From positions 96,740,048 to 96,804,047 of the forward strand of contig NC_083409.1 of assembly GCF_020745735.1 (NCBI RefSeq): 64,000 nucleotides of DNA, in the 5' to 3' direction. Made by a program: the position numbers and the translations under genes. This DNA is from Hemiscyllium ocellatum (taxonomy: Eukaryota). The notes beneath the pieces are model-generated. The model searched no databases. It was given only the letters and a program-made list of their open reading frames with translations, and was not told where the DNA came from. This document shows positions 7,171 to 56,734 of this stretch, piece by piece (positions within the stretch are counted from its first letter, which is position 1; the number at the start of each line of letters is the position of its first letter).

Positions 7171-7622
7171 TTAAGCGTGTGCATGTAAAACTTAAAAATG
7201 CACCAATTTGTTTATGTGCAAATAACCGTCTCAATTTTTCAAATTGTCTTATGAAGACATTGTGGGAAGTGAAGGAATAGATAGAAAGCAACTCTTGATA
7301 TTGGGAAGTAGGATAAAATTTAGAGTCCGACCTTTGAGCAGCAGAGTTAGAAAATATTTCTGGGTGCCTGTCTAATGGTAGAAACTCTTCAAATAGCAGT
7401 TTATAGTTGATTTGCTTGTAAATTTCAAATGAGATGTATGAACAAAAAGGTTTTGAGAGATATTGAGTTCAGTGTACATGGAGTCAGTCATTGACTAGCC
7501 AACATTTTAAGTGAATGTCAGAATAGGCTTTTGGGGCTAAATAGTCTACTTTGTTCCTAATGCACTGGGTCATTTAGCACTGGTCAAATTATCCTGAGTT
7601 TAATATTTGCTTATTCTTTCAC

Positions 7623-7812
7623 CTAGAGTTAAAAAATGTGGTGCTGGAAAAACACAGCAGGCCAGGCAGCATCCAATGAGCAGGAGAATCTTCAGGAAGG
7701 GCTTATACCCGAAACGTCAATTCTCCTGCTCCTCGGATGCTGCCTGGCCTGCTGTGTTTTTCCAGCACATTTTTCAACTCTGGTACTCCAACATCTGCAG
7801 TCCTCACTTTCT
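7623..7812. mobile_element. Family A fold-back PLE cassette with partial hammerhead core
   Basis: Arms ~7625-7689 and ~7720-7781 are reverse complements; apex holds gggcttatacccgaaacgtc; direct repeat TTCTTTCAC at 7614-7622 and 7809-7817. Confidence 0.8.
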
Positions 7813-8478
7813 TTCACTAACCGATCAGTGTCCAGTAAATCAGAAATCAGTCCGGTGAAAATGAAATGTCTGCCTTACCAGCACCTTTTTGTAATTGGTT
7901 CTGGTGCTCCTTTGGCTTTATGTATTGATCATTAAAGGATCTATCAGCATCTGCATTTTGGTTGCTTTTCACTTTCTTTTTTCATCAACCTCAATCATTT
8001 GGATGCAATTGTGAAACACTTAATTAAAATCTTTATTTGGGCTTGGAGGAACTAATAATATTTGTATTCAAGTCTTCAGTATTTTTATTTAAATTATGAC
8101 CACTGTCTTAGAATCTTTTGTACTAGAGCTTTTAACTAGAGCCTTTAAAATATCAATATTAATCAGTAGTATTGTTGCCTTTTCTATGGATTTGTTTTTG
8201 TAGTAACAAGGACAAATCTGAAAATAACAGGCTGCAATATAATTGTATTTTTTAATTTGTTCACAGCATGTGAACATCACTTGCTAGGCCAGCATTTATT
8301 GCCTATCCCTAATTGTCCAAAGGATAGATTAGGATACTTCAATAATATAAAGTTTATACTTGCTATCTGAAAAAAATGACACTTAGCTGATGTGCATGAT
8401 TATAAACTGGACTTAATTGCAATCATATCTTACATGTAACAAAACTAAGAGCAGCTGAAATGAAACAGATTGGAGATG

Positions 8479-8508
8479 CTGAAGAAGGGTCATTGGACCC
8501 AAAACGTT
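8479..8508 (+). ncRNA. Degenerate minimal hammerhead ribozyme (PLE solo unit)
   Basis: CTGAAGA-A-GGGTC-attg-GACCC-(G>A)AAA-CG-TT, followed by a PLE-type tail. Confidence 0.55.
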
Positions 8509-9007
8509 GATTCTGCTTTCCTGCAAATGCTGCCAGACCTGCTGAGTTTCTCTAGCATTTTGTTTTTGCTGTACTTTATTTGCTCTGACCTGGTTATTAA
8601 TTATCAATGAACCCAGTTTCTAATTGAGACTTCTACTTTCCATTCCATTTTACTTGCCTAGCAATTGCTATATCTTAAAAATAACTGGGCCGTGAAGTGA
8701 ATTTTGGGGTGTCTTCTGCACGCTGAGTTATTTTGTTCTCTAGCCAGTGTCCTTGCTCTTTTTATTTTGTTTCTCTCCTCATGATTGATGTAGACAGCAT
8801 CTGGGAGAATTTCAGTTTTGGTCAGGTATCTGTGACTGGGTAAGTCTTTTTCACCCATATCATTCCTCCATGGTATGCACCAGCACACAATACCAGAAAT
8901 CATTAACAATGCTGATGCTACCTGGAAAGAGGAAGTTAGTGTAAATAACTAAGCACTGCAATAAGGAGTATATTTAACTATATATCAAATCAAGTTTATT
9001 GTATCAT

Positions 9008-9282
9008 AAAATCCCTAGAGTATTGAAATAGGCCATTCAGCCCATTTGAGTCCACCCCTAGAGCATCCTACCCAGAGTCATTCACCCATCGCTCCCTCTC
9101 CCCTCCCCTTGTCTTTGTAATCCTGCACTTCCCATGGCTAATCCACCTAGCCTGCACATCTTTGGACTGTGGGAGGAAACTGAGCTCCTGGGGAATACCC
9201 GAACAGTTATTAGAGGATGGAATCGAACCCAGGTCCCTGGTGCTGTGAGACAGCAGTGCTAATTACTGAACCACCATGTCCC
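9008..9282 (-). mobile_element. HE1-type V-SINE
   Basis: Reverse complement has tRNA A/B boxes (ggttcagtaattagcact...ggttcgattcc) and the V-domain tttcctcccacagtccaaagatgtgcagg. Confidence 0.85.
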
Positions 9283-10844
9283 ATATATACCATACTTGGG
9301 AAGGATTGAATGCAGGTGAGATTCAAAAACGGGTCCAGGGATGATGAGCTTCACTTGTGACAATAGCTTGGAAGGCTGAGCATGTTTTTCTTGAGAGAAG
9401 AGAGCTGAGGGGAGGTTTTTTTTAATAGAAGATTTTAAAATCAATACAGGTATGGACACAATGGATTAAAGAAAGAGTTCCTGCTCAAAATAGAATCAAA
9501 AATCAAAGGACACGCTTTTAAAATCTTTGGCAACACATAGCAAATGTGAGAACTTTGACACCATATGGTTCAGGTTGGCAATGCACTACCTGGAATCGTG
9601 GTGGAACAAAGTTTGTTTTTATTGAAGCATTCATGAGGACATTGTGTCAATTTTAAGTAATCATCTTGTGCAGGATTATGAAGAAAGTCAGGAGTTTTGT
9701 ACTAGATCAAAATGCTCAAAAAAACCATGCAAAATGATGGACAGATGGTCTTCTGAACAGTAATAATCTAATTCTGAAATTTGTTCACAAATGAACAGTA
9801 TACATGTTTTATAGTAACTTCAGCTGATTTTAATAGATGCAGCTTTTTGAGAACTATTGTGACAATTTCTAGTTGGTCCTGGTAATATAGATTTGTAAAT
9901 TCTGTTTAAGTTGAGCCTTCTCTCAGACATCTGGTTTAAACTACAATAAAATTCCCTTCAGGATGAAGGATCATTTTGTTGATTGAATTATATGCCCAGA
10001 GGTTTTAAATAGCACCATTCAAGTTCATGTACAATCCTTGCCATGTTTCTCGGAGAACATGCAGTGCCTTGACTTGTATTACAATACATTCTTCCGTTTA
10101 GGACATGTACGTTTTGTTAAATAGGTTCAGACCAAAGCCTCGGCCTTCAACATTAGCCTATCTTTTTTGCTGTACATACGTTGTGTGACACATTTTTAGT
10201 AAATTCTGTTGTATGCTGTGAATCACTGTAGACTGAAAAGAAATGAATTGGAGTACAATAAGTTCGACAATTTACTATTCAGCCCAAGAAACCGGAGTGC
10301 TCTGGAAATTAAATAACAGGCAGTTGGTCACTGACAGCAAGTGAAAATAAGTGGTCCTGCTGCAATCTACAGCCACAATTCAAGTTGGGTTTGTCAGGCA
10401 AATGGGATTCCATCAGTTGGTTGTCAGACAGTGATATTGTCAGGGAATGACACATGCTTCACTAACTGACCAATTGTTTTTAATTAGATTTTGGTTCCAG
10501 TGTTAATCAACAGATTATTTATTGCTTTGTCCTTGCTGTATGCTTTGTATATTTGCAAAGTTCCAATCGTACTTCCAAGGAAGTAATAGTTATAAAATAC
10601 TTTTGAGGAAGTAATACACCACTTGTGTTTCCTTTGAAGTTGTGTACACACATCAAGCATCATGATTTCTACTTCCAGAAAATCCCAGCGCACAGGGATC
10701 TCATGAGTTTTGCACAGGATGAAAAAATATTCAAGTGGATGCTGCCATGCCCAGTGTATAGTACCTGATCAACAGAAGCCAATCTGGTGCCATGGAAAAA
10801 CTTGGCAACCACAGAAGTAATTTCCTATGTCTCCACACTTAATT

Positions 10845-11370
10845 CAATTTGTTCACAGGGTATGAGCATTTATTACCTGTCCCCAGTTGCCCAAAGGGCA
10901 GCTGAGAGTCAACCACATACAGTGAATCTGGAGTCATGTGTCAGCCAGACCAGGTAAGGATGTTAAGCTTGAAATCTATTGCTAGAAAAGCGCAGCAGGT
11001 CAGGCAGCATCCAAGGAGCAGGAGAATCGATGTTTCGAGCACGAGCCCTTCTCCTGCTCCTTGGATGCTGCCTGACTTGCTGCACTTTTCCAGCAACACA
11101 TTTTCAGCTCTAATCTCCAGCATCTGCAGTCCTCACTTTCTCCTAGAAGGATGTTAAGCTTTCTTCCTCTAAAGACAGTAGTGAACTGGGTGGGACTTTT
11201 TCCCCCCAACAAATCAACAACAGTTTTTTGTGGTCATTTGACTGTTTAATTCCAGCATTTTTTTTAAAAATTGAATTCCGATTCCACCATCTGCTGGAGG
11301 ATGATTTGAACCTGGGTTCCCAGAACATTACCTCGATTTCTGCGTTAATATTCTAGCAACAATATCACAA
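10845..11370 (-). mobile_element. tRNA-derived SINE with LINE-derived tail, interrupted by a PLE hairpin
   Basis: Minus-strand B-box ggttcaaatc and body ccttacctggtctggc...gtggttgactct; related copies at ~4610-4810, 35780-36000 and 51560-51800. Confidence 0.7.
10971..11146. mobile_element. Family A fold-back PLE cassette with 15-bp TSD
   Basis: Inverted arms ~10979-11025 and ~11049-11096 plus tail; exact direct repeat AAGGATGTTAAGCTT at 10956-10970 and 11147-11161. Confidence 0.88.
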
Positions 11371-14137: not shown

Positions 14138-15200
14138 TGTCACAAAGTTGGTGCTTTTACTAAAAGCTGTTCCTTTATGCAAGGATACTGTGTCCTCTGG
14201 ATTTTTTCAGTGGGGTTGTCTTTTTTTAAAAAAAAGTCCAGGCTCCGAATGGACTGGTTTGGTATAGAGATGAAAAGGATATTAGGAGGGTTTTTTGTGT
14301 ATAGGTAAACTGATGAGACTTTAGGTCACAGCTTTCATGTTTTAGAAGTAACTTGTGTAATGAAAGGGGGGTGGTCAGTCCTGGAAGCTGAATTCTTGTT
14401 GAGTCAGTTCAGCAATAGTGGACTGTGGNNNNNNNNNNNNNNNNNNNNNNNNNNNNNNNNNNNNNNNNNNNNNNNNNNNNNNNNNNNNNNNNNNNNNNNN
14501 NNNNNNNNNNNNNNNNNNNNNNNNNNNNNNNNNNNNNNNNNNNNNNNNNNNNNNNNNNNNNNNNNNNNNNNNNNNNNNNNNNNNNNNNNNNNNNNNNNNN
14601 NNNNNNNNNNNNNNNNNNNNNNNNNNNNNNNNNNNNNNNNNNNNNNNNNNNNNNNNNNNNNNNNNNNNNNNNNNNNNNNNNNNNNNNNNNNNNNNNNNNN
14701 NNNNNNNNNNNNNNNNNNNNNNNNNNNNNNNNNNNNNNNNNNNNNNNNNNNNNNNNNNNNNNNNNNNNNNNNNNNNNNNNNNNNNNNNNNNNNNNNNNNN
14801 NNNNNNNNNNNNNNNNNNNNNNNNNNNNNNNNNNNNNNNNNNNNNNNNNNNNNNNNNNNNNNNNNNNNNNNNNNNNNNNNNNNNNNNNNNNNAGCCTTTT
14901 TGTTTTAAAACTCTGTTTGAGGGGTTTGTTTATTGGGACTGTTGTGTATTTTTCACTACAGCATAATTTAAAGTCTAGTTTTGGATTGACTGAGGTCTGT
15001 GGATATTCTATATTTTGCTCTTTGTGTTTGATTCTGTAATTTTGTGAATAAATTCTTGTCTGTTTTTAAACTTGGTAGTCAGCCTAGCTAATTTTCTCCA
15101 AGTAATTTTCATTGTACACTTACTGATACAAATTGCAAAATTATAGTCTGGGCTGCCTGCTTAAGAATGTTTGGAGTGGTCTGGCCTTATCCATATGGCA
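14138..15200 (+). mobile_element. Probable solo LTR spanning the assembly gap
   Basis: TGTCAC start; AATAAA ~15047; its 3' end is related to the reverse complement of the 31807 element terminus. Confidence 0.45.
14429..14892. other. Assembly gap (464 N)
   Basis: Run of N. Confidence 1.
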
Positions 15201-18044: not shown

Positions 18045-18410
18045 GGAGAAATAGTCAGGACTGCAGATACTGGAAAAGTCAGTTGATAAAATCTGGAGCT
18101 GGAAAAAACACAGCAGGTTAAGCAGCTTCAAAAGAGCGGGAGAGTTGACATTTCAGGTAGGACCCTTCATCAGGGCTAGGGAGGAGGAAGGGAGCTGAGA
18201 AATAATTGGGGGGGGGGGGTTGGGAGTGGTAGGTAGGAGGTGAATGAGATTAGTCAGTGGGAATAGTGGGGTGGATAGGTGGGAAGGAAGATAGGTCAGG
18301 TCAAGGGGGACAGGGTGGGGAGAGAGGGCTGAACCTGGGATGAGGTGGGGAGATTTGGAAGCTGGTGAATTCAATGTTGAGGCCATGTTGGCATCTGGTT
18401 GATTATTCCT
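18045..18410 (-). mobile_element. Family A PLE pLTR fragment
   Basis: Tail ggactgcagatactgg...cacagcagg, a hammerhead core, and a purine-rich spacer on the + strand. Confidence 0.75.
18147..18173 (-). ncRNA. Minimal hammerhead ribozyme (family A)
   Basis: Minus strand reads CTGATGA-A-GGGT-cct-ACCT-GAAA-TG-TC. Confidence 0.65.
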
Positions 18411-18693: not shown

Positions 18694-18783
18694 TACTTAG
18701 ATTTTCGAAAGGTTCTTTAAGGAAGTCCCTTCACAGGTTAGAAAAAATAAAGCACATGGGGTAGGAGCTAATGCATTAGTATG

Positions 18784-19255
18784 TGTTTGCGAAAGTGTAT
18801 GAGCAGGTAGGGAAAGAGTGAAGTTTTGGGTTGTGTAACAAAGGCTCAACTAACATGACTTTGACCAGATAAGAACTTGCAGTAAATAATGAGGTGCTGC
18901 AGGCAAGGGTCATGGATTAACAAGGTGAAAAGCAACCATTATGTAATGCCAGTTAACAAGGTTAAGAACGTCCATTGTATAATGCCAGATGACTTAATCT
19001 TTACTGTTGATGCTCATTGATTGTAACAGTCACCCAATCAATATAGATGTTGCCTTATTTGGAAGCGGTTCCCTGTAAGTCTCTATATAATTCCTTAAGA
19101 ATCTACTATTCGAAAGAAGACCAAAAACTCTTGTCTCTGTGCAAATGGGCAATCATTCTCTCTCCCTCCAGAGCCCAGAATAAAGATGGAGGTAAAGCCA
19201 CTCTGTGTCTGAGTGTTTGCTTCGACTGGTATGGGGATAGGGAAATGGGACGACA
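18784..19255 (+). mobile_element. Solo LTR, copy 1
   Basis: TG...CA termini, TATATAA ~19085, AATAAA ~19178; interrupts a CR1; homologous copy at 39647-40197. Confidence 0.7.
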
Positions 19256-22029: not shown

Positions 22030-23177
22030 TTGAAAATCTCACACCACCAGATTATAGTCCAGGTCGACTGGTTTCAGCGGGCAAACACTCCACTAGTTAG
22101 TCATACCTGGCCCAAAGGAAGATGGTTATGGAGGGTCAGTCAGCTGCAGGATACCTCTGCAGAGGTCCCTCAGGGTAGTGTCCTTCGACCAACAATCTTC
22201 AACTGCTTCATTAGTGACCTTCACTCTGTCATCAGGTCATAAGTGGGGATATTCACCGATGATTGCACAGTGTTCAGCACCATTCGCGATGGTTCAGATA
22301 TTGAAGCAGTCTGTGTTCAAATGCAACAAGATCTGGACAATATTCAGGCTTGGGCCAACAAGTGACAGTAACATTACGCCACACAAATGACCGACAATGA
22401 CACCACCAATAAGAGGCACTCTAACCACTCGATATTCAATGGTATTACCATCACTAATTCCCACACTGAACATCCTTCTGGTTACCATTTACCAGAAACT
22501 CAACTGGACTCACCATGTAAACACTGGCTATAAAAGTAGATCAGAGACTAGGGATACTGCAGAGAGTAAGTCGCCTCCTGACTCCTGAAAGCCTGGCCAC
22601 CATTTAAGGCACAAGTCAGGAGTGTGATGGAATGCTTCTCACTTGCCTGGATGGGTGCAGCTCCAACAACACTCTAAGCTTTGACACCATCTTGATCAGC
22701 ACCACATCTACAAACATTCAATCCCTTCACCATCAGTGCTCAGTAGCAGCAGTGTGTACTACCTACAGGATGCACTGCAGAAATTCACCAAAGATCCTTG
22801 GACAGCACCTTCTAAACCCATGACCACTTCCATCTGGAAGGACAAGGGCAGCAGGTACTTGGAATGCCACCACCTGCAAGCCATTCACTGCCTTAACTTG
22901 GGAAATGCTGCTGTTCCTTCACAGTTGTTGGGTCAAAGTCCTTGAATTCCCTCCTTACCAGCATTGTGAGTCAACCCACAGCAAGTGGACTGCAGTAGTT
23001 CAAGAAAGCAGCTTGCCACTACTTTCTCAAGGGCAAATAGGGATAGACTATCAATGCTAACCAGCCAGTGACACCCAAGTCCCACAGATGAATTTAAAAA
23101 GTTTATATTTTAACCTGGTGCCATGTGATTTTCAACTTTGTCCACCCCAGTCCAACCGGCACCTCCATATCATTTTT
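22030..23177. mobile_element. Family B PLE fold-back termini enclosing a ~1 kb LINE 3' fragment
   Basis: Left arm gaaaatctcacaccaccagattatag; right arm taacctggtgccatgtgattttcaac plus tail; direct repeat TTTTCCCATGG at 22019-22029 and 23178-23188. Confidence 0.7.
22100..23095 (+). mobile_element. CR1/L2-superclade LINE 3' fragment (RT plus tail)
   Basis: VPQGSVLRPTIFNCFISDL and FTDDCT; tail gcagtagttcaagaaagcagc...caagggcaaataggg. Confidence 0.85.
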
Positions 23178-36484: not shown

Positions 36485-37492
36485 AAGACCGCAATTTTCC
36501 CCCAGACGTGATCGACGATGCTCACCACCACATTTCCTCCGCCCTTGAGTCCCGCCCCTCCAATCATCACCAGGACAGAACCCCACTGGTCCTCACCTAC
36601 CACCCCACCAACCTCCATATACATCACATCCGTCGTCACTTCCGCCACCTCTAAACGGACCCCACCACCAGGGATATATTTCCCTCCCCTCCACTATCAG
36701 CGTTCCGAAAAGACCACTCCCTCCGTGACTCCCTTGTCAGGTCCACACCCCCCACCAAACCAACCTCCATTCCCGGCACCTTCCCCTGCAACCGCAAGAA
36801 ATGCAAAACTTGTGCTCACACCTCCCTCCTTACTTCCCTCCAAGGTCCCAAGGGATCCTTCCATATCTGCCTCAAATACACCTGCACCTCCACACACATC
36901 ATTTACTTCATCCGCTGCACCCGATGTGGCCTCCTCTATACTGGGGAGACAGGCCGCCTACTTGCAGAATGTTTCAGGGAACACCTCTGGGACACCTGGA
37001 CCAACCAACCCAACCACCCCATGGCTCAACACTTCAACTCCGCTGCCTCCCACTCCATCAAGGACATGCAGGTCCTTGGACTCCTCCATCGCCAGACCAT
37101 AGCAACACGACGGCTGGAGGAAGAGCACCTCATCTTCTGCCTAGGAACCCTCCAACCACAAGGGATGAACTCAGATTTCTCCAATTTCCTCATTTTCCCC
37201 CCACCCCCCCATCTTGTCTCAGTCCCAACCATCGAACTCAGCACAGCCTCCCTAACCTGCAATCTTCTTCCTGACCTCTCCGGCCTATCACCCTCATCTT
37301 AACCTCTTTCCACCTATCGCATTTCCAACTCCCCTTCCCCCCCCCCAAGTCCCTCCTCCCTACCTTTTTATCTTAACCTGCTCGGCACACTCTCTCCTCA
37401 TTCCTGAAGAAGGGCTCATGTCCGAAACGTCGATTCTCCTGCTCCTTGGATGCTGCCTGACCTGCTGCGCTTTTCCAGCAACACATTTTCAG
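36485..37492 (+). mobile_element. Family A (Neptune-like) Penelope element 3' end: Zn-knuckle linker, GIY-YIG endonuclease, pLTR with hammerhead
   Basis: One frame with a single internal stop: PLVLTYHP...FRKDHSLRDSLVRS...CNRKKCKTC...TCTSTHIIYFIRCTRCGLLYTGETGR...EHL...HFNS...EEEHLIFCLGTLQPQGMN. Confidence 0.92.
37404..37431 (+). ncRNA. Minimal type I hammerhead ribozyme, intact core (family A)
   Basis: CTGAAGA-A-GGGC-tcat-GTCC-GAAA-CG-TC; predicted cleavage after C37431; palindromic ACGT in place of helix III. Confidence 0.78.
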
Positions 37493-38819: not shown

Positions 38820-39386
38820 CCAGCATACAAACATTTTGTAAATTATGCATTAAACATCTCGATCCCTCTGTATGTCAGAATTCTGCGGTTATTAATTAAT
38901 ATTCTGCTTTTATTTTCTTTCTGCCAAAGTAAATAACTTCAGATTTTCCCACGTTATACTGCACCTATATTAGTCTGCATCCTTGTACTGCTTTCTTCAC
39001 AAAATACTTAGCTATCTGTCTTGCCATCTGCACATTTGCTATCATGCCAATTACTTGGATGAGGCTATGAGAATGTACATCAATCTGAAGAAGACCCATT
39101 TATATGTATGCTGTGCTTTCTGCCAGCCAATCCATCTTCCATCCATGCTAATTTATTATCTCCTGCACCAAAGAATCCTACTTTGCAGCTTTTCATATGC
39201 TTTCTGGAAATTAAACACTGTACACCAATGAGCTCCCCTTTATCCACAGTCCATGTAATTCCTTGAAAACATTTGTAAAAATAATTAAACATAATTTTCC
39301 ATTTATCAAAGCTAGATTGACTTTTCCCAATTGTTTTTGAGATTTTCTTTGAGTCCAATTTATAACCGTCTGATTCTAATACCTTC

Positions 39387-39510
39387 CTGATGAAGGGCTT
39401 ATACTCGAAGCGATTCTCCTGCTCCTCGGATGCTGCCTGACCTGCTGTGCTCTTTCAGCACCACGCTCTCGACTCTGATCTCCATCATCTGCAGGCCTCA
39501 CTTTCTCCTG
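39387..39510 (+). mobile_element. Family A solo pLTR tail starting at the hammerhead core
   Basis: CTGATGAAGGGCTTATACTCGAAG followed by the tail; direct repeat ATACCTTCC at 39379-39387 and 39511-39519. Confidence 0.8.
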
Positions 39511-39646: not shown

Positions 39647-40197
39647 TGTCATCCCATTCATGCCTCAGTCAAAGCAAAATGCTCAGACGCGGTATGGTTT
39701 TACCTCCTCCAACTTTATTCCTGTCTAGAGGGAGACTGAATGAATGCCGATGTGCACAGAAACATGAGTTCTCAGTCTTCTCTTGAACAGCAAATTCTTA
39801 ATGAAATTCATAGTCACCTTGCAGGGAGGAGCATCCAGATAAGGCAACAATGCGCATTGTTTGGATGACCGATACAATCAGCGAGTGTCAGTAGTAAAGA
39901 TTAAGCCTTCTGCTGTTACACAATAAATGTTTAACCTTGTTAACTGGCACTACATAATGAATACTTTTGACTTTGTTTACTGACTTTACATACTGAATGT
40001 TTCTTCATCTTGTTAACTGGCTTTACATAATGTTTTTCCACCTTGTTAACCCATTACCCTTGCCTCCAGCACCTCGTTGTTCACTGCAAATTCTTATCTG
40101 AACTGAGTCATGCTAGTTGAACCTTTTTTTTTGTTTCACAAAACTCAAAACTTAACTCTTTCCCTACCTGCTCAGACCCTATACACACTCTCAAATA
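39647..40197 (-). mobile_element. Solo LTR, copy 2 (same family as 18784-19255)
   Basis: Reverse complement aligns end to end with copy 1; internal ~37-bp tandem repeat at 39935-40057. Confidence 0.75.
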
Positions 40198-43500: not shown

Positions 43501-46365
43501 AAATGACCTCCAAAGCAGTGTTAGTGTGTATTTTACTGGATCATGTAAACAAAACCTTGGAATGTGAATGTTCTTCATGCCAAATCCCTGCCCAGATCTT
43601 GTTTTAACCTATATCAGTGAATGAGGAAACATTAAGAAGATGGATATACAAGTTCAGACATGAGCTTGAATAGTGGAGCAGGCTCCATGAGCAACTGAAC
43701 AACTCCAGGTGTGTGCTGACGAAAAGCATCGAGAGAAAATAAAGAGGAACCGAGGACATCACACACCAGAACTTAACAACTAAGTGCTCTGTCAAAACAG
43801 TTATGCTGCTTGCTGCTAAGAAAATTAGGGAGGCCCACATTAATGTCATGCGCAATTCAAACCAGTCAATTTGTAGTGTTTGTACAACTTTGACACCGAT
43901 TTATGAATAAGTTGTCAAAGATACTGTCCGAGTGGAATATTTGTATTACGCATACTAAGCTAGATGCTGAAATGTTCTAATTATTTGATTGTATAGAAAT
44001 GGATTGATCATAAAGGAGGTAATAAAGGGAAAACTAATGTTTCTACCAACTTGAAGTCTGTTGATTCCATCTATTTGAAATGACCAAAAATAATTTGAAT
44101 TCACTGCAGACCATAAAAGTGCTGGAACTCCATAATTTCTTGTCACCAAAAAGTTTCAGATCTTTTTTCCTTCAGTTTTTACTTCTGTAAGTGATTCACA
44201 GCATCAAACAAGCATGCAGAGCTCTGGAAATCTTCTCTGCCCCTCCACTAGAACTGCAAGATAAAATCTAATGCTTGTACAGGATGTAAAAGTACACATT
44301 ATAGCTTTACATCAAGAATGTCTTGTACTTTTGAAACCCCATCGGCAACTACTTCTGTGGCAGTAGATACTGTGTTGCCTTCCTGGTGTCAGTCATGGGT
44401 GTGTAGAATTTTGTTGCACTGAAGGAAGTCAATTAGCCCTTCATGCCTGTACTGGCTCCCAAGGAGCTATCCAGCTTGTCCCATTCTTCAGCCCTATCTC
44501 CATAGCCCCCGTCAATTCATCACTTTCAAATGCTTCCCTAGTTCTCCTCTGAAATCTCCCAAGGAGTCCCCCTCCACTCTCCCAGGTAGCACATTCCAAA
44601 TCCTAACAACTGAGTAAAGAAATTTCTCCTCCACTTACTCCTAGCTCTCTCGTTGGCAAGCTTGAAATTGTGGTTCTTAGTTACTGACTTGCAAACTAGT
44701 GGAAACAAAATATCCTCTTTCACCCTGTCAGAATTGTTCATAACTCTTAAGATTACCTCTTATTCGTCTTAGAACACAGAAGATTAAGCTGAATTTCTCA
44801 CCTCTTTCCTTGTATTGAAAATCTGTAATTCCTGGTGTCATTCTAGTAAATCTCCTGTGAACCATCTCCAGGGATTCAACATTCTTCTTTTAAATAGGTG
44901 CTCAGAACTGAAAGCAATACTCTAAATGTTTTTTGACCAATGATTTGTGCAGGTGAGGCATCACTGCCTTGCTTTTATACTCTATCTCTATTCATAAACC
45001 CAAGGATCCTGTAAGCTGCCTTAACAACTGTTGCACCTTGCACGGTCACCTTGAGAGAATTATGCATGTGAACCCTAAGTGTCACTCTGCTCCTGTACTC
45101 CCCTTGAAGTTGTACCATTTGAGCCTGTATTGGTTTGTTTTTCAACCAAAATGCATCACCTCATATTTGTCTGCAATGAAGTTCATCTGTCAGATATCTG
45201 CCTATTTGACCAACTTGTCAATGTCCCTCTAGTTGCTTAGCATCATCCTCACAATTTGCTATTCCCCCTAGCTTTGTATCCTCTATACATTTAAGGGATT
45301 TTGCTCCCAACCTCCATCTCCAAATCATTTTATATAAATCAAAAATAAAGCAAGGGTGTCAACACCTATCCATTGGTACATCATTATCGATTCATTTCCA
45401 GTCTGAGAAATGCCCATCTATACCTTCCCTCATGTTGCCACCTTCGAATTCATGCTGCCAAGGACCCATTAATCCCAAACATTTCCAACTTGCAAATGAA
45501 CCTACCAGGCACTGTATCAAATGCTTTCTTAAAGTCCAAACCACAACAGTGCCATCATCCACTGCATGTGTCACCTCATCAAAGAACTCCATTAAAGTTG
45601 TCAAACATGACCTATCCTTGATAAAGCCATGTTGGCAGTCTAGTATTACTTTTATTGAAGTGTATGTTTATCTTATCCTATAGTATGGCCTCCATCGGTT
45701 TATGCACTGTTGGTGTCAAACTAATAGGTCTACAGTTTGTGAGCTATCCTTTTTCCTCTCTCTTAATCAATAGCATCAAATTTGCAATCCTCCAGTCCCC
45801 AGGGACTAATTCGGTGTTCAAAGAGACCTGGAGAATTTGTCAATGACTCCATAATTCACCTCCTTATCTCCGATAGGATCCTTTCCATCCAGGCCTGGTA
45901 ACTTCTACAACTAGAGTCTTGCCAGCCTTTTTAGCACCTCTTTATCTTTCATTATACTGTTCAGTTGCTCAATACCCATATTTTCTCATTTGGTTAAGAC
46001 AGGCAAAATATTCACTTCGTACCTCTGTCATGCCTTTGTTACAGTGAGCAGTTTACCCTGCTTGTTTCTTTGGGACCCACTCTATCCTTAGCTAATTTTT
46101 TACTATTAATTTGTTTGAAGAACATTGTAGAATTTGTTTTAGTGCAACCTTGCCATCCTTTCCTTGTGCTTCCTCTTAGTCTTCCTTTTTCCAGCCTTGG
46201 CGCCTCTCTTGCATTTGAGATACTCTTTCTGATTTATACTGCTAACATTATTATTTCAGTATGCATCATCTGTCTCCTTTTACTCATTTTCTCATCAATA
46301 TCATTTGTCATTCAGGATATTCTAGCTAAGGGTGCCCTGTATTTATTTTATGGGTATGTACTTAT

Positions 46366-46600
46366 TGTTGTGGTTCTGTTCACCGAGCTGGCAGTTTTTG
46401 TTGCAAACATTTCGTCCCCTTTCTAGGTGACATCCTCAGTGCTTGGGAGCCTCCTGTGAAGCGCTTCTGTCATGTTCACAGGAGGCTCCCAAGCACTGAG
46501 GATGTCACCTAGAAAGGGGGAAAACATTTGCAACAAAAACTCCCAGCTTGGCGAACAGAACCACAGTAATGACACCCGAGCTACAAATCTTCTCCCAAAC
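46366..46600. mobile_element. Family C (Poseidon-like) fold-back cassette with hammerheads on both strands
   Basis: Arms 46369-46460 and 46475-46565, 14-nt loop, tail acccgagctacaaatcttct; ~16-bp TSD TATGG(G)TAT(G/A)TACTTAT at 46349-46365 and 46601-46616. Confidence 0.9.
46406..46439 (-). ncRNA. Minimal hammerhead ribozyme (family C)
   Basis: Minus strand reads gca-CTGAGGA-T-GTCaCCT-agaa-AGGgGAC-GAAA-TG-TT-tgc, with a 3-bp helix I. Confidence 0.72.
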
Positions 46601-47877
46601 TATGGTATATACTTATCTTGGACCCTATTCATCTCTCACCTTTTGAAAGTCTCTCATTTTTCATCTACTTCATCCATCAAAATGCGTTTTGAATCAACTT
46701 ACTCCAGTTCAACTTTGACCCCTGTTTTCCAGTGGGGCTCTTAATCCTTGACTGATTTGATTCGTTTCCAACTTAATATTGAATTTTATTATTATTGCTA
46801 TTTCTGAAATGCTGATGTTCTCTGCTTGACCTGCCTGATTTTCTAGGGCAAGATCCAGTACAGCTTCTTCCCTGGTAGGGCAGAAATGCACTATTCCGTA
46901 AAGTTCTCCTGCCCACATTGCAGGAATTTCTTCTTTCCATGTCCCACTTTACCTTATTCCTAGTCTACCCTAGGGTAATTGAAATCACCAATTATCACAA
47001 CCTGACCTGTCCTGCAGGTTTCCATAATCTGCCTACAAATACTGTCGTCTTGTTCCCATTATTTGGAGGTCCGTAATAAATATCCAATAAAGTCACCACT
47101 CCCTTCCTGTACCTCTGACCATATAGTTTCTAATCCAGGAATTCTATCTTGATACCATGCTTTTTTCACTCCCCCTGTTTCTACTAAAAACCAGTATCCA
47201 GTCCTTTTCTGGCATGAGCCTGTTTCTGTCAATGCTATTTTGTCATATACGCATTGAGCAATTTCTGCTTCCAGTTCCCCAAGTTTGTTCTCCATGCATT
47301 TCAATACATAAGTTTAACCCTGCCCTTATCTATTTATTGCTCATTGGGAGTTGACCATTTCTTTGGTTCATTCTCAACACTTAAACCTTTCCTCATCCTT
47401 CTGTCCGCTCACCATCCCTCTTTTGCTCTCACTAGTACTTTGAAAACTAAGCCCAGTTATCAATGCACCCTCTACCTTACAAGTTCGTATCTATCCTCAC
47501 TATGCTGTTTACACACTCAACCAAGAGAATAGTTCTATTTAGGCTCCGATGAAGCCAGTCTCTTCCGAACAGCTTTCTCGTTTCTCGAAAGTGATTGCCA
47601 TGTCCCAAAAATCTGAAACCCTCCCCATATCATAAATCCGCTGTGTCCATGAAATCACGAATTGCAAATTCCTAGTTGCACCAAAAACTAACAAACGTCA
47701 GTATTCATAGGCAAAAATTAAGTTTCAATTATATTTTTAATCGTTTTAACTTATTTTTAATGCGCTCCATTCTTTGAATTTCATCCTACATGGGAGTTCT
47801 TAGGAATGGAAGGTTTATAGAAATGAAGAAATGAGTGTACATCATCCCTCAAGCCACACATTTCCCTTTGCCTGAAT

Positions 47878-48560
47878 GATGTGGAGATTCTGGTGTTGGA
47901 CTGGGGTGGACAAGGTCAAAACTCGCACGATATCAGGTTATAGTCCAGCAGGTTTATTTGTTTGAGACTAGTCTACTAGATTGAGGATGCTATCCTTGCT
48001 GATGGAGTTGGAGCTGTCAGGTGTTTGTGTCCTTGGCTCTTCTAGCAGTGAGGCCAGTGTTTCTTCTGCTAGGGTGATGCAAATAAGACCATCACATCGA
48101 AGGAAACTATGACCTTGTCTTCCTCTACCCTTGGTGTCTTTGATCAGGAATTCCTGGGTGGAGTGGATAAAGTTGCTTGAGTCTTCTACTAGGTATTTCA
48201 GTTTACGTTGCAGTTCCCTTGCTGTATGTCAGTGTACCGGGCAGTGAGACTGTGGGGTCTGAGAGGGGGGCCCGTTGTTTATGTAGCTTTGGTAATCCAT
48301 AGATGTTGGAACCTTCAGGTTTTGTTATTTGAGGGTCTGGCTTGTTAATTTCACCTGTCTTTTGAAGGTTCCTCAAGGGTTGCTGTAATACGGTTTTCTT
48401 GCTGTGGAGTCTGGTCCATCGCCACCTGTTGGTAGGTGTTAGTATCTATGAGTAGTGTGCTTTTTCAGTGTACTGTGTTCTGTTCAGGATGACGGTCATG
48501 TGCCCTTTGTCTGTTTGAGCGCATTGCACACGTAGAAGATTTGTAGCTCAGGTTGTGGGT
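47878..48560 (-). mobile_element. PLE composite: family B tail, Poseidon-like RT fragment, family C tail
   Basis: Minus-strand HSTQEFL, IVSFDV and PLRP remnants; ends in agaagatttgtagctcagg (reverse of the family C tail). Confidence 0.7.
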
Positions 48561-49686: not shown

Positions 49687-49740
49687 TTGTTTCTAGAACC
49701 AGAACCTCAAACTGAGCTACAAATCTTCTCAAAACATACT
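49687..49740 (+). mobile_element. 54-bp family C micro-cassette with 10-bp TSD
   Basis: Tail gagctacaaatcttctc; direct repeat AAATCTAGAG at 49677-49686 and 49741-49750. Confidence 0.7.
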
Positions 49741-50265
49741 AAATCTAGAGCTCTTTGAATGACGCAGAAGATAGAAATAAAGAGAAAAAAGAGCAAGTCT
49801 ACATCTGGGAAGCCAGGGAGGAGATTGCTGAGCCTTTGGCTTTGATCTTTGTCATCTTCATGTCGACAGGAATAATACCAGAATACTGGAGGATAGCAAA
49901 TGTTTCTCTCTCCAAGAAGAGGAGTAGAGACAACCCTGGTAATTATGGACCAGTGAGCCTTGCTTCAGTTGTGGGTGAAGTGTTGGCAAAGTTTATAAGA
50001 GAGAGGATTTATAATTATCTAGAAAAGAAAAAGTTGATTAGGGATAGTCAACACTGTTTTGTGAAAAGTAGGTCATGCCTCTCAAACCTTATTGAGTTCT
50101 TTGAGTTGTGGATAGGGAATAAGGATGTTGTAGGTTACAGAAGATTAGATAAGCTGCAGAGCTGGGCTGAGAGGTAGCAAATAGAATTTAATTCTGAAAA
50201 GTGTGAGGTGATTCACTTTGGAAGAAGTAACAGGAATGCAGAGTAAGATTCTTTGTGGTGTAGGT

Positions 50266-50457
50266 GCAAGTGAGGACTGCAACTGCTGGAGATCGAGTCT
50301 AGATTAGAGTGGTACTGGAAAAGCAAGTGGGTCAGGCAGCATCCAAGGAACAGGAAACTTGACGTTTCTGGTAGAAGTCCTTCATCAGGGCTGATGAAGG
50401 GCTTTTGCCAGAAGTGTCAATTTTTCCTGCTCCTTGGATGCTCCCTGACCATCTCCG
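50266..50457. mobile_element. Family A fold-back cassette with head-to-head hammerhead cores
   Basis: Minus core 50361-50388 and plus core 50391-50418, separated by a 2-nt apex; arms extend to ~50329 and ~50450. Confidence 0.85.
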
Positions 50458-51898
50458 GTAGTGTAGATAAGCAGAGAGATCTTTGTGTCCAGGTACATAG
50501 ATCCTTAAAAGTTGCCACCCAGGTTGATAGGGTTATTAAGAAGGCATATATGTCTTAGTTTTTGTTGGTAGAGGATGGAGTTTCAGAACAATGAGGTCAT
50601 GCAGCAGCTGTATAAAACTCTGCAGCCACATTTGGAGTATTACGTACAGTTCTGGTCACCGCATTATAGGAAGGACGTGGAAGCTTTGGAAAGGGTTCAG
50701 AGGAGATTTACTGGGATGTTGTCTGGTATGGAGGGAAGGTCTTATGATGAAAGGCTGAGGGACCTGGAGCTGTTTTTGTTAGAGAGAAGAAGGTTGAGAG
50801 GTGACTTAACTGAGGCATATAAGATAATCAGAGGGTTAGATATGTTGAACAGTGAGAGCCTTTTCTCCCAGATGGTGATGGCTAGTACAAGGGAACATAG
50901 CCTTAAATTGAGGAGTGATAGATATAGGATGGATGTCAGAGGTAGTTTGTTTACTCAGTAGTAAGGGCATGGAACGCACTGCCTGCAACTGTAGTAGACT
51001 CGCCAACTTTAAGGGCATTTAAATGGTCATTGGATAGGCACAATGAATAGTGAACTGGAATAGTGTAGGTTAGATGAGCTTCAGATTGGTTCCACAGGTC
51101 GGCGCAACATTGATGGCCAACAGGCCTGTACTACACTGTAACGTTCTGTATTCTATGACAGGTGTTAGGTAGGAAGTGCAACGGAGAACGAAGGAATATA
51201 GAAGGACCATAAAGGAGAAATTGTAAAAGATCAGCTGATCCTCAGCCATGTAAAGTTAATTATTAAAAAATTAAGATTACATAAAAGATGCACCTTGAAA
51301 TTTTATGATTATAGTATCGCAAAGTTCATTGTAACCAACTGAGTACATTTTAAAGTATAGTTATTTGATGTGGTAAAGATTATCAGAGAAAATGTCAATT
51401 ACAGATTGTTGAAATTTTAGCAGACCTGGTGTTAATATTTGTTATGGAGGGAGATGGTAGCTAGGGGGACAGCAGTAGTACAATTTTTGAATAATCAGAA
51501 ACAATGGAAGAAACATAATGTTTCCTAAAGCATGGTAAAAAGATGATATTAATAATAGTGTGATTATACACAGAATGATTTGCTGGAGAAAATGATTTTT
51601 CCTTGAGATCTGCAAACCCATCTGATTCACAAATGTGCCTGAGGGAAAGAAATCTGCAGTCTGGTCTGGCTAACCATGATTCTATTTAATGGCAGGTTTG
51701 AAAGGCAAATGTCCTATTTCTTACAGTCTTACGTGCTACACTCAGTATACATTAAGGTGGTTGACTCTAAAATAGCCCAGCAAAGGGAAATTAAGGCTGG
51801 TCTTGCCATTTTTTATCTAGTGTGTGTAAAATTGAGAATCTCCTTTTTTGTGAATACACTTCTGAAAGAATCTTAGTCTTCTGCTATTTCTCTTCTAG

Positions 51899-52042
<144 letters not shown>

Positions 52043-52696: not shown

Positions 52697-52810
52697 AGTT
52701 AAAAATCACACAACATCAGGTTATAGTCTAACAGGACTATTGAGCTATAACCTGGTGTTGAGAGATTTTTAACTTTGTCCACCCCAGTTCAACACTGGCA
52801 CCTCCATATC
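52697..52810. mobile_element. Family B short fold-back cassette
   Basis: agttaaaaatcacacaacatcaggttatag pairs with ctataacctggtgttgagagatttttaact; tail ttgtccaccccagttcaacactggcacctcc. Confidence 0.78.
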
Positions 52811-52846
52811 CTCCACTCAAGACAGCTGCTGACTTCTCAGGCTATA

Positions 52847-52977: not shown

Positions 52978-53542
52978 TATTGAGAATTCAGAGCTAGAGG
53001 TATGCCACAATGCCATCTGCTGGCCTTGTCGCTCCATGTATCAACCTGAACAGAACCATGATTTAGATCCTGGAGTTTGAAATTATTGGCTATTCATAGA
53101 TCAGGGAGATCATTGATCAAAAGTGCCAGTATTCCATGGAAGAAAGATTTTACAAAATGTGGTAATTTTGAAACCATGTTCTCTTCTATGTAGTTGGGTT
53201 ACTTTTGGTCCAAGGAATGGTTTTCAGTATACTGATCTCCAGTGGATTTTGGAAGCGACCTCAGGACATCTGCATTTGTTTGTGTCTGAATAAATGGTTG
53301 AGATTGTGGACTTTGCGTCAAGGAGTGCAGTAGTAAACTTACACACAGCTTTGTTGTTTGATTTTCTCCCCTCGCTGACTTTTAAAATATTGACCAGATT
53401 GTGATTTTATTTTGTTTCTAACTTAAATTTTCAACACTTCTACTTGGTGGGAAAATGCCTGTTAGGGATGGATTTTTTTTTTTATCGATTTTAGTGCATC
53501 ATGCATACCTCTTTTTGCATCATGGACACATTTGCATGCTAG

Positions 53543-53672
53543 GAGGAAGTGAGGACTGCAGATGCTAGAGATCAGAGTCAAAAAGTGTGGTGCTGGAAAA
53601 GCACAGCAGGTCAGGCAGCATCCGAGGAGCAGGAGAGTCTGTATTTCGAGCATCAACTCTTCGTCTGGAATG
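53543..53672 (-). mobile_element. Family A solo pLTR tail with degenerate hammerhead
   Basis: gtgaggactgcagatgct...gcacagcaggtcaggcagcatccgaggagcagg...tttcgagc. Confidence 0.8.
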
Positions 53673-53714
53673 TCACCAAATCTTCATCCACCTTTGCATA
53701 CGACTTTTACTTCA

Positions 53715-54053: not shown

Positions 54054-54444
54054 CTTCTGCGTTTTAAATCCACTTGACTCTCTGAGGAGCCTATGTACAA
54101 GCAGAAAATAAGAGTAGGAGGGAGCAAAGGAGTGGGAAGGGAGTGAAGAGCTAAAGATAGACGCAAACACAATGGAGTGAGGAGGACAGAAGAGGGAAGC
54201 AGCAAGGGGGATAGAGTGTAAGAAACATTACATGGGATGGAGCGAGGGGTTTCAGAGAGCTGGTGAATGAGAAGCAACATGTGAGAGGTAAGTGATAAAC
54301 CAGATAGTTTCGAGGCAACCAATAAGTTTTTAATTTAAGAGGTTAAAGGCCAGGAACATTACTCTATGTGCACTGGAGGTGTTGGTATTCGACTGGGATG
54401 GACAAAGTTAAAAATAACACAACACCAGGTTTATTTGAAAGAAC

Positions 54445-54473
54445 AAGCTTTCGGAGTGCTGCTCCTTCGTCAG
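54445..54473 (-). ncRNA. Minimal hammerhead ribozyme (family B)
   Basis: Minus strand reads CTGACGA-A-GGAG-cagca-CTCC-GAAA-GC-TT. Confidence 0.75.
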
Positions 54474-54512
54474 TTAGTTAGTGGAGCTGGATCATTGAAC
54501 ACAGAATTTATA

Positions 54513-54809
54513 GGCACAGTGGCTCAGTGGTTAGCACTGCTACCTCACAGCGCTGGGAGCCTGGGTTCGATTCCAGCCTCTGGCAACTGTCTGCGTGGAG
54601 TTTGCGCATTCTCCCAGTGTCTGCATGGGTTTCCTCCGGATGCTCCGGTTTCCTCCCACAGTCCAATGCTAAATTACCCATAGTGATAGGTGCATTAGTA
54701 GGGAGTAGGGGAATGGGTCTGGGTGGGTTACTCTTTGGAGGGTCGGTGTGGAGTAGTTGGGCCAAAGGGCCTGTTTCCGCACTGTAGGGAATCTAATCTA
54801 ATCTAATCT
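54513..54809 (+). mobile_element. HE1-type V-SINE, full length
   Basis: A box tggctcagtgg, B box ggttcgattcc, V-domain, (AATCT)n tail. Confidence 0.92.
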
Positions 54810-55090
54810 AGCAAAAGGTCATAGTGTCATACAACTGATGCAATATATTGAACAAACCTAGATTGCTGTTAAGTCTTTCATCTTTTAGAATGGGTTGCAA
54901 GTTTTGATTCATTAATATGCAAGTCCCAGGACTTCTTTCAAGTCACATTCCTGAGATAACTTCAGGCTTTTTAAAAAAAAGTGACATTCCAGCTCCGACA
55001 AAGCAGACACTACAACAGTCGCCAAACAGGGATGTTCCCTCCCAGTCAGGGAACCCTTCAGTGGTCCAGGACATTTGGCCTCAGATTAGT

Positions 55091-55401
55091 GGGTGGCACA
55101 GTGGTTAGCACTGCTGCCTCACAGCGCCAGAGACCCGGGTTCAATTCCCGCCTCAGGCAACTGACTGTGTGGAGTTGGCACGTTCTCCCCGTGTCTGCGT
55201 GGGTTTCCTCCGGGTGCTCCGGTTTCCTCCCACTGTCCAAAGTCCAAAGATGTGCGGGTCAGGTGAATTGGCCATGCTAAATTGCCCGCAGTGTTAGGTA
55301 AGGGGTAAATGTAGGGGTATGGGTGGGTTGCGCTTCGGCGGGTCGGTGTGGACTTGTTGGGTCGAAGGGCCTGTTTCCATACTGTAACTAATCTAATCTA
55401 A
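55091..55401 (+). mobile_element. HE1-type V-SINE, young CpG-rich copy
   Basis: ggttcaattcc B box, gtctgcgtgggtttcctccgggtgctccggtttcctcccac, (AATCT)n tail. Confidence 0.92.
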
Positions 55402-55599
55402 ATCTTCAGGTGACTGTCCTCTAAGGTGGATTTTGGGTTATGCAATACCGCAGTGGATGAGCAGAGGCTGATAGTCAAGTTCGGTACCCATGGGGATGGC
55501 CTCAACTGGGACCTTGGGTTCATGTCGCACTACAGATGACCCCCCAATACACTGTAGACTCTTTCACATGCTCTTACATACTCATGCAGACTCCCTGAC

Positions 55600-55860
55600 G
55601 TGCTATCTCTCACTCTCTCATGCTGTCTTTCTCTCTGGCGCGCGCACTCACACACTCACACACTCTCTCTCTCTCTCACCCATGCGCACATCTTCTCTCA
55701 CGCATATACTCCATCACAATCTCACACACTCTATCACTCATGCACGCATGTGCACTCTCCCAACCCATCTCTGCCCCCTCACCCATCTTTCACTCTGTCT
55801 CTTCTCCACCCCCCCCCACCTCTTTTTACCCGCTCTCTTCTTCTCCCCCTCTCTCGACCT
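55600..55860 (+). repeat. (CA)/(CT) low-complexity tract within the PLE
   Basis: ctcacacactcacacactctctctctctctc and similar runs. Confidence 0.8.
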
Positions 55861-56104
55861 GTAGCTGTAGATACATTCTATTTTGTTCAAAAAGCACACA
55901 TTCTGTAGGCAATCCGTGTGGTACTTCATAAACTCCTTTGGAAATAGAACTAGTCTGACTCATGACTGGGATGGAGACAGACTGTAACCTCCCCTTTAAT
56001 GCAGTGTCTGAGCTGAGGTGTCACCATTTTTTAGTAAAACCTTAAGTTATCTCAAGAATGTGACTTGAAAGAAGTTCTGGGAGTTATGTATAAATTAATG
56101 AAAT

Positions 56105-56334
56105 GGGAGAAAGTGAGGACTGTAGGTGCTGGAGATAAGAGTCTAAAAGTGTGTTGCTGGAAAAGCACAGCCAGTCAGGCAGCATCTGAGGAGCAGGAGA
56201 GTTGACATTTAGAGTATAAGCTATTCCTCAGGAAGGTCATGATGAAGAGCTTATGCTCGAAATGTCAACTATCCTACTCCTCAGTTGCTGCCTGACTGGC
56301 TGTGCTTTTCCAGCAACACACTTTTGGACTCTGA
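56105..56334. mobile_element. Family A fold-back cassette nested in the family B arm
   Basis: Arms ~56138-56230 and ~56240-56332; plus core (A)TGATGA-A-GAGC-ttat-GCTC-GAAA-TG-TC. Confidence 0.87.
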
Positions 56335-56479
56335 CACGAATGAATCAAACCTGCAACCCAGTTTAAAAAATGAAAGACTTAACAGCAACATAGATTTATT
56401 CAATATATTGCATCAGATGTATGACTCTCTGATCTTTTGTTATAAATCCTGTGTCCTATGACACTGCCCCATTAGCTAC

Positions 56480-56508
56480 CTGATGAAGGAAAAGCACTCC
56501 GAAAGCTT
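56480..56508 (+). ncRNA. Minimal hammerhead ribozyme, intact core (family B)
   Basis: tac-CTGATGA-A-GGA-aaagcac-TCC-GAAA-GC-TT-gta; 3-bp helix I; AAGCTT palindrome. Confidence 0.75.
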
Positions 56509-56734
56509 GTACTTCCAAATAAACCTGTTGGACTATAACACCTGGTGTTGTGATTTTTATCTTCGTCCACTCTTAGCATGTGCTTTCTTGTAAGAGTTTC
56601 TTTTAAAGAACATGTTAGGAGCGCCAAACAAAGGATGATGCCAATCTCTAGTCATAATGACAAAAATTTGATAGAAATGGAAAATAGTTCAGATCAGTGA
56701 CAGTTAATTTACACATTGTGTATGTTTGAAGGTA

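Follow-up and report, generated by a model that had tools for sequence, protein, structure and literature searches.

We analyzed a 64,000-nucleotide stretch of the genome of the shark Hemiscyllium ocellatum (contig NC_083409.1 of assembly GCF_020745735.1, positions 96,740,048 to 96,804,047; hereafter the window) that contains short fold-back cassettes with hammerhead-like sequences, and asked how these cassettes relate to Penelope-like elements (PLEs) and their pseudo-long terminal repeats (pLTRs). The window consists of repeat-rich vertebrate DNA. Its sole assembly gap, at 14429-14892, has no copy of the sequence families described below in its flanks or within 3 kb, so that no finding depends on continuity over the gap. 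The cassettes fall into three families, A, B, and C, which have no sequence in common beyond chance matches of 7-8 nt, in agreement with a first-pass annotation of this DNA. That annotation had counted at least eight fold-back inserts, of which we found seven: five of family A, one of family B at 52697, and one of family C at 46364. An independent scan for inverted repeats returned matches at 7641-7768, 10966-11109, 29612-29800, 46364-46570, and 56138-56332, and alignment added two more, at 50263-50457 and 52697-52810. The proposed family C fold-back at 49687 turned out to be a single arm, and the proposed family B fold-back at 22030 is a tail-less fragment of 29-34 nt for which no second arm was found.

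Positions in family A are given as q numbers on a reference, refA, which joins the long copy at 36430-37492 to the 36-nt tail from 11110-11145. In refA the hammerhead box CUGA starts at q975, cleavage is predicted after q1002, and the tail occupies q1064-1099. A search with refA located 24 arms at about 17 loci in the window, so the five loci listed previously were an undercount; the family is present as five short fold-backs, as single arms, and as 5'-truncated copies on the kilobase scale. We refer to each fold-back by its approximate start. The one at 7623 (7623-7814) combines a tail-less inverted arm (7623-7690, q1003-1071) with a tail-bearing direct arm (7689-7814, q973-1099), and the inverted arm begins exactly at G1003, after GUC, as the predicted product of hammerhead cleavage would. 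At 10971 (10971-11145), a tail-less arm (10972-11052, q979-1059) meets a tail-bearing direct arm (11049-11145, q1005-1099) that begins at q1005-1009, with 3-4 nt of microhomology at the junction. The fold-back at 29575 (29577-29802), nested within the open reading frame (ORF) of an older family A copy, has a tail arm at 29577-29705 (minus sense) and a tail-less arm at 29704-29802, both starting from about q971. The fold-back at 50266 (50263-50457) consists of a tail arm at 50263-50397 (minus sense) and a tail-less arm at 50391-50457, with its apex between q974 and q975, and is hosted by an ORF fragment of a long interspersed nuclear element (LINE) reverse transcriptase (RT) at 49749-50958(+). 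Decayed LINE RT fragments of this kind (e.g., NYRPVSL, FDKVPHGRL) are also seen at 5636-7047(+) and 58253-58742(-). The fifth fold-back, at 56105 (56106-56332), sits inside a repeat that bears family B sequence and joins a tail arm (56106-56234, minus sense) to a tail-less arm (56237-56332) at q972/973.

The copy at 36430-37492 (+), which is 5'-truncated and ends without tail, connects family A to a coding element. It contains the C-terminal part of a PLE ORF (36655-37299), a 3' untranslated region (UTR), and an intact minimal hammerhead (37404-37431), and its continuity supports the reading of family A as the last ~130 nt of a GIY-YIG-encoding PLE, in line with the PLE link proposed earlier. 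The ORF upstream of the terminus reads ...FPCNRKKCKTC...IIYFIRCTRCGLLYTGET...REH...AQHF...LEEEHLIFCLGTLQPQGMN. Reading the sequence, we recognized in it a CX4CxxC linker and a GIY-YIG domain with CCHH; a CX2-5CxxC linker together with a CCHH motif marks the endonucleases of Neptune- and Nematis-type PLEs (PMC8557442). From its linker, family A would be predicted to be Neptune-like. When 20 ORF pieces of the window were compared with Pfam, the only match was a weak one of this endonuclease ORF to GIY-YIG (E = 0.017). Its homologue P0002, which is 58% identical, lies above the GIY-YIG gathering score, and the best protein match of the shark ORF is an uncharacterised protein of the bamboo shark Chiloscyllium punctatum with 75% identity. 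These results support the earlier assignment of a GIY-YIG sequence near 36485. A sequence search of the PDB with the endonuclease piece gave chance matches only.

Single arms with tail lie at 39384-39508 (+; q972/977-1099), a unit resembling a solo pLTR, at 18045-18229 (-; q910-1099), and at 53542-53672 (-; q970-1099), the last with ~16 extra nt at its 5' end and flanked by the direct repeat ATGCAAAGGTG/ATGCAAATGTG, as read by eye; a further single arm lies at 8479. Longer copies comprise another 5'-truncated copy on the kilobase scale at 2081-2600 and two large head-to-head pairs. In the first pair, an old copy with tail at 28995-30087 (-; q130-1099), the one split by the fold-back at 29577-29802, faces a tail-less copy at 30169-30703 (+), and their terminal parts are only ~53% alike. 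In the second (33727-34519), a tail-less minus copy (33727-34445, q335-1059) faces a plus tail arm (34449-34519, q1026-1098); the arms are 0.74 identical and the flanking duplication is not significant. In view of this low relatedness between arms, the two large pairs were not counted as single-event fold-backs. An 18-bp tandem repeat (CACAACCCAGCCCATCAT, 2.7 copies) is present at 30820-30867, within the family A nest at 28995-30840.

Six pieces of family B and three of family C were found in the window. The family B fold-back at 52697-52810 consists of a tail-less arm (52697-52741) and an arm bearing a 37-nt tail (52737-52810), and it has no hammerhead core. A long family B copy with tail at 54374-54992 (-) contains an intact minimal hammerhead at 54445-54473, and a copy at 56340-56570 (+), which has a hammerhead-like core at ~56481-56510 and ends inside the tail, continues the repeat split by the fold-back at 56106-56332. 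Short single arms with tail lie at 47878-47960 (-), starting a few nt 3' of the predicted cleavage site, and at 23111-23174 (+). No coding part of family B was found in the window. The copy at 54374-54992 is split by a tRNA-derived short interspersed nuclear element (SINE). Copies of this SINE lie at 54530-54810 and 55090-55400 (minus strand), with similar sequences near 9027-9245, 31271-31486, and 36430-36500; their head reads GGTGGCACAGTGGTTAGCACTGC..., their conserved body contains ...GGTTTCCTCCGGGTGCTCCGG..., and they terminate in a (TAGAT)n-like sequence. They account for the region 55000-55540, previously read as a second GIY-YIG sequence, which has no Pfam match.

The family C fold-back at 46364-46606 has a tail-less arm (46364-46460), a 14-nt loop, and a tail-bearing arm (46475-46606), and the single arm at 49687-49740 (+) is a micro-copy of ~50 nt comprising the 3' end and tail. 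A family-C-like tail fragment (48534-48553) lies directly upstream of a decayed ORF at 47971-48553 (-), a candidate PLE N-terminal and RT fragment. This ORF contains DKG at 48511, YGLPKLHK at 48301, and SFDV at 48104, which by eye we take to be PLE N-terminal and RT-1 motifs, with no database confirmation. The first-pass annotation had named a Poseidon-like RT at ~48000-48300, of which these motifs are what stands; the fragment at ~48000-48500 matched nothing in Pfam, PDB sequences, the protein atlas, or a homologue search; its pieces are too short and decayed.

The arms of the fold-backs follow a common pattern. All seven short fold-backs (five A, one B, one C) pair one tail-bearing with one tail-less arm (p ~0.008 if the arms were independent), and the tails measure 36 nt in A, 37 nt in B, and ~30-34 nt in C, as expected from the earlier description of a long arm ending in a family-specific tail. 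In family A, every tail-bearing arm terminates at ...CACTTTCTCC (q1099) and the tail-less arms terminate at q1059-1071, which is also the zone in which single and long copies lacking the tail come to an end; the tail is present in some single copies and absent from others. The inner ends are concentrated as well: 10 of the 24 family A arms begin at q966-983, the 5' edge of the ribozyme (p < 1e-6). Because single arms have the same inner boundary, the boundary belongs to the template and not to the hairpin. Which arm reaches farther inward varies, since at 10971 the tail-less arm (q979) extends beyond the tail arm (q1005), at 7623 the reverse is seen, and the 33727/34449 pair is another instance of unequal reach. 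The short fold-backs have loops of 1-30 nt and their arms diverge by 4-17%, those at 46364 (C) and 7623 (A) being taken as the youngest inserts. When 21 arms were compared, both arms of each of the five family A fold-backs had their own partner as nearest relative, and every junction was different, suggesting that each family A hairpin formed anew at insertion, as the first-pass annotation had favoured. In addition, the coincidence between the ends of tail-less arms and of tail-less single copies points to a second priming event.

Most short inserts are flanked by direct duplications, the lengths of which vary from 6 to 16 bp. We searched blindly for the best flanking direct repeat of each insert and compared it with 2000 random placements of equal span. 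Duplications were found for 10971 (15/16 at 10955-10970 and 11146-11161, p < 0.0005), 29575 (13/14, p < 0.0005), the family C fold-back at 46364 (12/13, p = 0.0005), the single arm at 39384 (11/12, p = 0.0015), and the family C micro-copy at 49687 (11/12 AAATCTAGAG.., p = 0.0035), with weaker ones for 7623 (ATTCTTTCAC/TTTCTTTCAC, 9/10, p = 0.02) and 50266 (8/9, p = 0.06). The blind test gave no significant duplication for 56105, where 6-7 bp (AATGAA) are visible only against a paralog, or for the family B fold-back at 52697, which has ~10 bp with an indel. Fisher's combined p over eight listed inserts was 3e-9, so duplications accompany most copies beyond chance, as had been claimed. Three inserts, 56105, 29575, and 50266, split older repeats, again in line with the earlier description. 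Comparison of 56105 with its paralog in the long family B copy, at 54868-54992 (reverse complement), revealed a clean insertion of ~245 nt with AATGAA duplicated, and comparison of 29575 with the paralog at 36790-36940 revealed a clean insertion into the ORF, the 14-bp site being single in the paralog. The paralog alignment for 50266 is poor and gives a rough picture only. Hence, the uninterrupted paralogous copies identify the inserts at 56105 and 29575 as true discrete insertions.

The consensus sequences of all three families fit published features of PLE hammerheads, which are minimal motifs without helix III and are thought to work as dimers (PMC4209133). The family A consensus from 21 aligned arms reads CUGAUGA-A-GGGC-UUAU-GCCC-GAAA-CG-U-C, in agreement with the contig consensus, and that of family B reads CUGAUGA-A-GGAG..CUCC-GAAA-GC-U-U. 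The family C consensus, CUGAGGA-U-GUCACC..GGGGAC-GAAA-UG-U-U, corresponds to the hammerhead-like core found on both arms of the fold-back at 46364. A strict descriptor of the minimal hammerhead matched only at 37404-37431(+) and 54445-54473(-), with 0 matches in 200 shuffles. Rfam had no hammerhead (types I, II, III, HH9, HH10) at the gathering threshold or at E <= 10, as expected for motifs without helix III. Most copies, including the cores of the fold-backs, are mutated, often at CpG sites. The apex of the hairpins, previously placed at or near the hammerhead core throughout, is found there in family A, where it lies at the cleavage site or precedes CUGAUGA by 0-9 nt. The description fits loosely in family C, with an apex ~22 nt 5' of the core, and fails for the family B fold-back at 52697, the apex of which lies ~20 nt 3' of the cleavage site, so that this fold-back contains no ribozyme. 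The proposed hammerhead content of the cassettes is thus confirmed only in part, at the level of the consensus sequences and of the two strict matches. Sub-threshold Rfam matches to microRNA families (mir-2756, mir-4716, mir-873, mir-3158) at 7651-7760, 10989-11088, 46423-46512, and 29646-29766 are artefacts caused by the long hairpins alone.

Family A is also abundant beyond the window. Matches were found in thousands of contigs from RNA libraries of four organism labels, and in two DNA runs of the same species the summed depth along refA rose from ~2-3e4 at q942-959 to 7e5 at q969-977 and 1e7 at the core. Relative to the adjacent 3' UTR, the excess amounts to ~20-fold at the boundary and 300-500-fold at the core. 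Sequences past q~968 are heterogeneous, with a loose-end agreement of ~0.36-0.4, indicating that the majority of copies truly stop at this point. From the core depth, divided by that of long unique-looking contigs, we obtain ~1-1.6 million arms, to be taken as an order of magnitude only, and the 24 arms per 64 kb of the window agree with this number. Roughly estimated, a few percent of the shark genome may consist of these units. In rare contigs (runs X18, X21, X1, and X2; reference 37400-37492), positions ~q1055-1063 are joined to q971-975, sometimes with 1-12 filler letters. As judged from the joints, these contigs represent putative head-to-tail dimers of a tail-less ~85-nt unit, reminiscent of retrozyme-like tandems. 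A splice acceptor behind the boundary at q~970 was dropped as a candidate, there being no AG at this position in the consensus.

We conclude that the cassettes are probably fossil insertions of the 3'-terminal pLTR module of three unrelated PLE families, and that the fold-backs were made anew at each integration. The module would comprise a minimal hammerhead, a region in which reverse transcription starts, and an optional tail. In the mechanism that we propose, two staggered target DNA ends would each prime reverse transcription on PLE terminal RNA, with a start at the distal site yielding an arm with a tail of 30-37 nt and a start at the proximal site yielding a tail-less arm. Both cDNAs would reach the 5' end of the short template and become linked head to head, probably through a template jump from end to end, and fill-in of the staggered cuts would create the duplications of 6-16 bp. 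Single arms, fold-backs, the rare head-to-tail dimers, and the kilobase-long copies could then be alternative outcomes of one process. The coincidence of outer ends and the reversible asymmetry of the arms favour this two-primer model over snap-back of a single cDNA and over a hairpin that transposes as a unit. We further suggest, tentatively, that the inner ends may record the 5' ends of template RNAs in vivo, in which case the q966-983 class would mark a transcription start internal to the pLTR and the q1003-1009 class, comprising the inverted arm of 7623 and the direct arm of 10971, would mark self-cleavage by the hammerhead.

Several points weigh against this interpretation. All element counts (24 A arms, 6 B, 3 C) come from one 64-kb window of H. 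ocellatum, and the depth profiles, obtained from assembler contigs of public runs for a high-copy repeat, are semi-quantitative and lack single-base resolution. As no RT domain of family A is present in the window, the assignment of this family to the PLEs relies on its endonuclease part and on its terminal anatomy. In all three consensus sequences helix I has no more than 2-3 bp, and the hammerhead call, a good match at the level of the motif, denotes a predicted ribozyme and does not imply activity. The two large head-to-head pairs may be separate insertions, judging by their sequences. Finally, a purified PLE protein shows no strand bias in its use of start sites in vitro, unlike the shark fold-backs, which always use one site per arm.

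Evgen'ev and Arkhipova reportedly described inverted pLTRs and a one-sided tail for canonical endonuclease-positive PLE insertions in 2005. In rotifer Penelope elements, an inverted pLTR adjoins a direct pLTR and is 37 bp shorter, a 31-bp tail is present on one side only, and the whole insert lies within a 9-bp duplication (Arkhipova et al. 2013, PMC3846280). As a rule, PLEs are strongly truncated at the 5' end, include an inverted copy that is itself 5'-truncated, and have a tail of 30-40 bp at one end (Craig et al. 2021, PMC8557442), and their variable duplication length has been attributed to variable spacing of the two cuts (PMC8557442). The shark inserts share with canonical insertions the inverted 5'-truncated copy abutting a direct copy, the strong 5' truncation, the tail at one end, an inverted repeat that is shorter by about the tail length, and the variable duplications. 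They differ in that they usually consist of two terminal modules only (~110-245 bp) without ORF, in that short forms vastly outnumber longer copies, and in their sharp inner boundary beside the hammerhead. Of the minimal PLE hammerheads reported, most are single and dispersed, 'probably related to truncated PLEs', and some are paired on opposite strands (Cervera & de la Pena 2014, PMC4209133). The shark motifs likewise have CUGANGA and GAAA boxes and occur as dispersed singles with some opposite-strand pairs; the published pairs are 100-700 bp apart, whereas shark cores may be as close as 1-30 nt. Compared with published PLE hammerheads, helix II is only 4 bp in families A and B and most copies are mutated, and the shark motifs are known from sequence. 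The novelty implied by the first-pass annotation is accordingly not supported: pLTRs in inverted and direct orientation, a one-sided tail of 30-40 nt, duplications of variable length, and minimal hammerheads in the pLTRs are already published, so that, as far as sequence tells, the shark families are new and the kind of element is known.

The closest biochemical counterpart is PAc, the purified PLE protein of the lizard Anolis (Poseidon), which cuts both target strands, extends each of them, and initiates reverse transcription from two internal sites bracketing the tail, with no strand difference in start-site use in vitro (PMC11167929). The shark arms resemble its products in having two apparent start sites, one on either side of the tail and ~60-100 nt 3' of the predicted hammerhead cut, and in the proposed use of both strands. 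No RNA ends cut by the ribozyme were evident with PAc in vitro, whereas one or two shark arms begin at the predicted cut site.

Of the competing explanations, snap-back self-priming, in which a single cDNA folds at its 3' end and is copied back, fares best, and we consider it unlikely. Self-priming was inferred from palindromes at the junctions of inverted pLTRs in rotifers (PMC3846280), and the short loops of 1-30 nt and the 3-4 nt of microhomology at the 10971 junction would suit it. A copied-back arm should be able to cross the tail, however, and the second arm invariably ends at q1059-1071, just as independent tail-less insertions do. The opposite asymmetry of inward reach at 10971 and 7623 suits two independent templates better, and extension of both target strands by a PLE protein (PMC11167929) also speaks for two primers. 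Snap-back is therefore not favoured as the specific mechanism, for which the first-pass annotation had put it forward. A variant in which the hairpin arises by cDNA self-priming at hammerhead helix II was rejected, as no apex lies at the helix II loop.

Alternatively, the short unit could be a dedicated SINE-like non-autonomous family with its own masters, mobilised in trans by PLE proteins, rather than a side product of autonomous PLE RNA, which we regard as somewhat less probable still. The sharp 5' boundary just upstream of the hammerhead, the depth excess rising from ~20-fold to 300-500-fold, and the rough number of 1-1.6 million arms are compatible with such a family. In rotifers, pLTRs alone suffice to integrate foreign DNA in trans (PMC3846280), and animal retrozymes have been argued in a 2026 preprint to derive from PLE pLTRs (bioRxiv 10.64898/2026.07.22.740005). 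However, sequence upstream of the unit is random in most contigs, so that the short copies carry no conserved promoter region, the short copies mirror the subfamily structure of the long ones, and the same pattern recurs in three unrelated families, all of which speaks against dedicated masters. Like animal non-LTR retrozymes and Schistosoma Sm-alpha, the shark units are short, non-coding, and hammerhead-bearing, and would be PLE pLTR-derived and reliant on PLE proteins. The defining features of retrozymes are tandem arrays and circular RNA, unlike the shark units, which are dispersed singles or inverted pairs; no tandem head-to-tail array of hammerhead units was found in the window, and genomic contigs show joints of this kind only rarely.

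It is improbable that the hairpin itself is a non-autonomous element akin to a retrozyme or a miniature inverted-repeat transposable element (MITE) and re-inserts as a fold-back unit, the other option raised in the first-pass annotation. The units are discrete and carry duplications, and three family A fold-backs have both arms starting from q966-975, which resembles a common breakpoint. Yet the exact junctions differ in every copy, the inner boundary is also found in single arms, and partner arms are nearest relatives. The outer ends lack symmetry, since just one of the two arms has a tail, duplications of 6-16 bp are unlike those of cut-and-paste elements, and the same 3' ends occur on single arms and on kilobase-long copies next to a GIY-YIG ORF; the MITE-like form is therefore rejected. 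Moreover, an RNA forming a perfect hairpin would be a poor template, and the window contains no tandem ribozyme arrays. An origin of the fold-backs as errors of assembly, or as inverted repeats arisen by chance, is hardly credible: inverted PLE structures are known to trouble assemblies (PMC8557442), but the arms differ by 4-17% and hence have aged since formation, flanking duplications and empty paralogous sites are present, and the family sequence (not the fold-back loci themselves) is abundant in contigs from independent DNA runs of the same species and from RNA libraries with two or more species labels.

Two further features of the window lie apart from the cassettes. Arrays of a 36-bp tandem repeat at 18917-18988 and 39930-40050 have reverse-complement units (TTAACAAGGTGAAA... 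and TTTCACCTTGTTAA...) and seemingly represent one family in opposite orientations. The longest stop-free stretch in the window (62346-63170, +; 275 aa) includes an EF-hand-like segment and may be a host exon or another repeat.

For annotation, the units should be labelled as PLE pLTR fragments, and the labels MITE, SINE, microRNA hairpin, and new ribozyme element should be avoided; long hairpins in particular may be falsely annotated as microRNAs. The strict pairing of a tail-bearing with a tail-less arm provides genomic support for the two-strand, two-start-site priming of PLEs described in vitro, and the match between the ends of tail-less arms and solo tail-less copies is further support for priming on two strands. 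Worth following are the very large copy number and the sharp inner boundary by the ribozyme, to which a second class of ends at the cleavage site may be added. If the classes of inner ends proved to be enriched genome-wide, about one million copies would constitute a fossil record of two things: cleavage by the minimal PLE hammerhead in vivo, and a SINE-like burst, reaching a few percent of the genome, that arose from reverse transcription primed within the 5' pLTR of PLE RNA or from solo pLTR transcripts.

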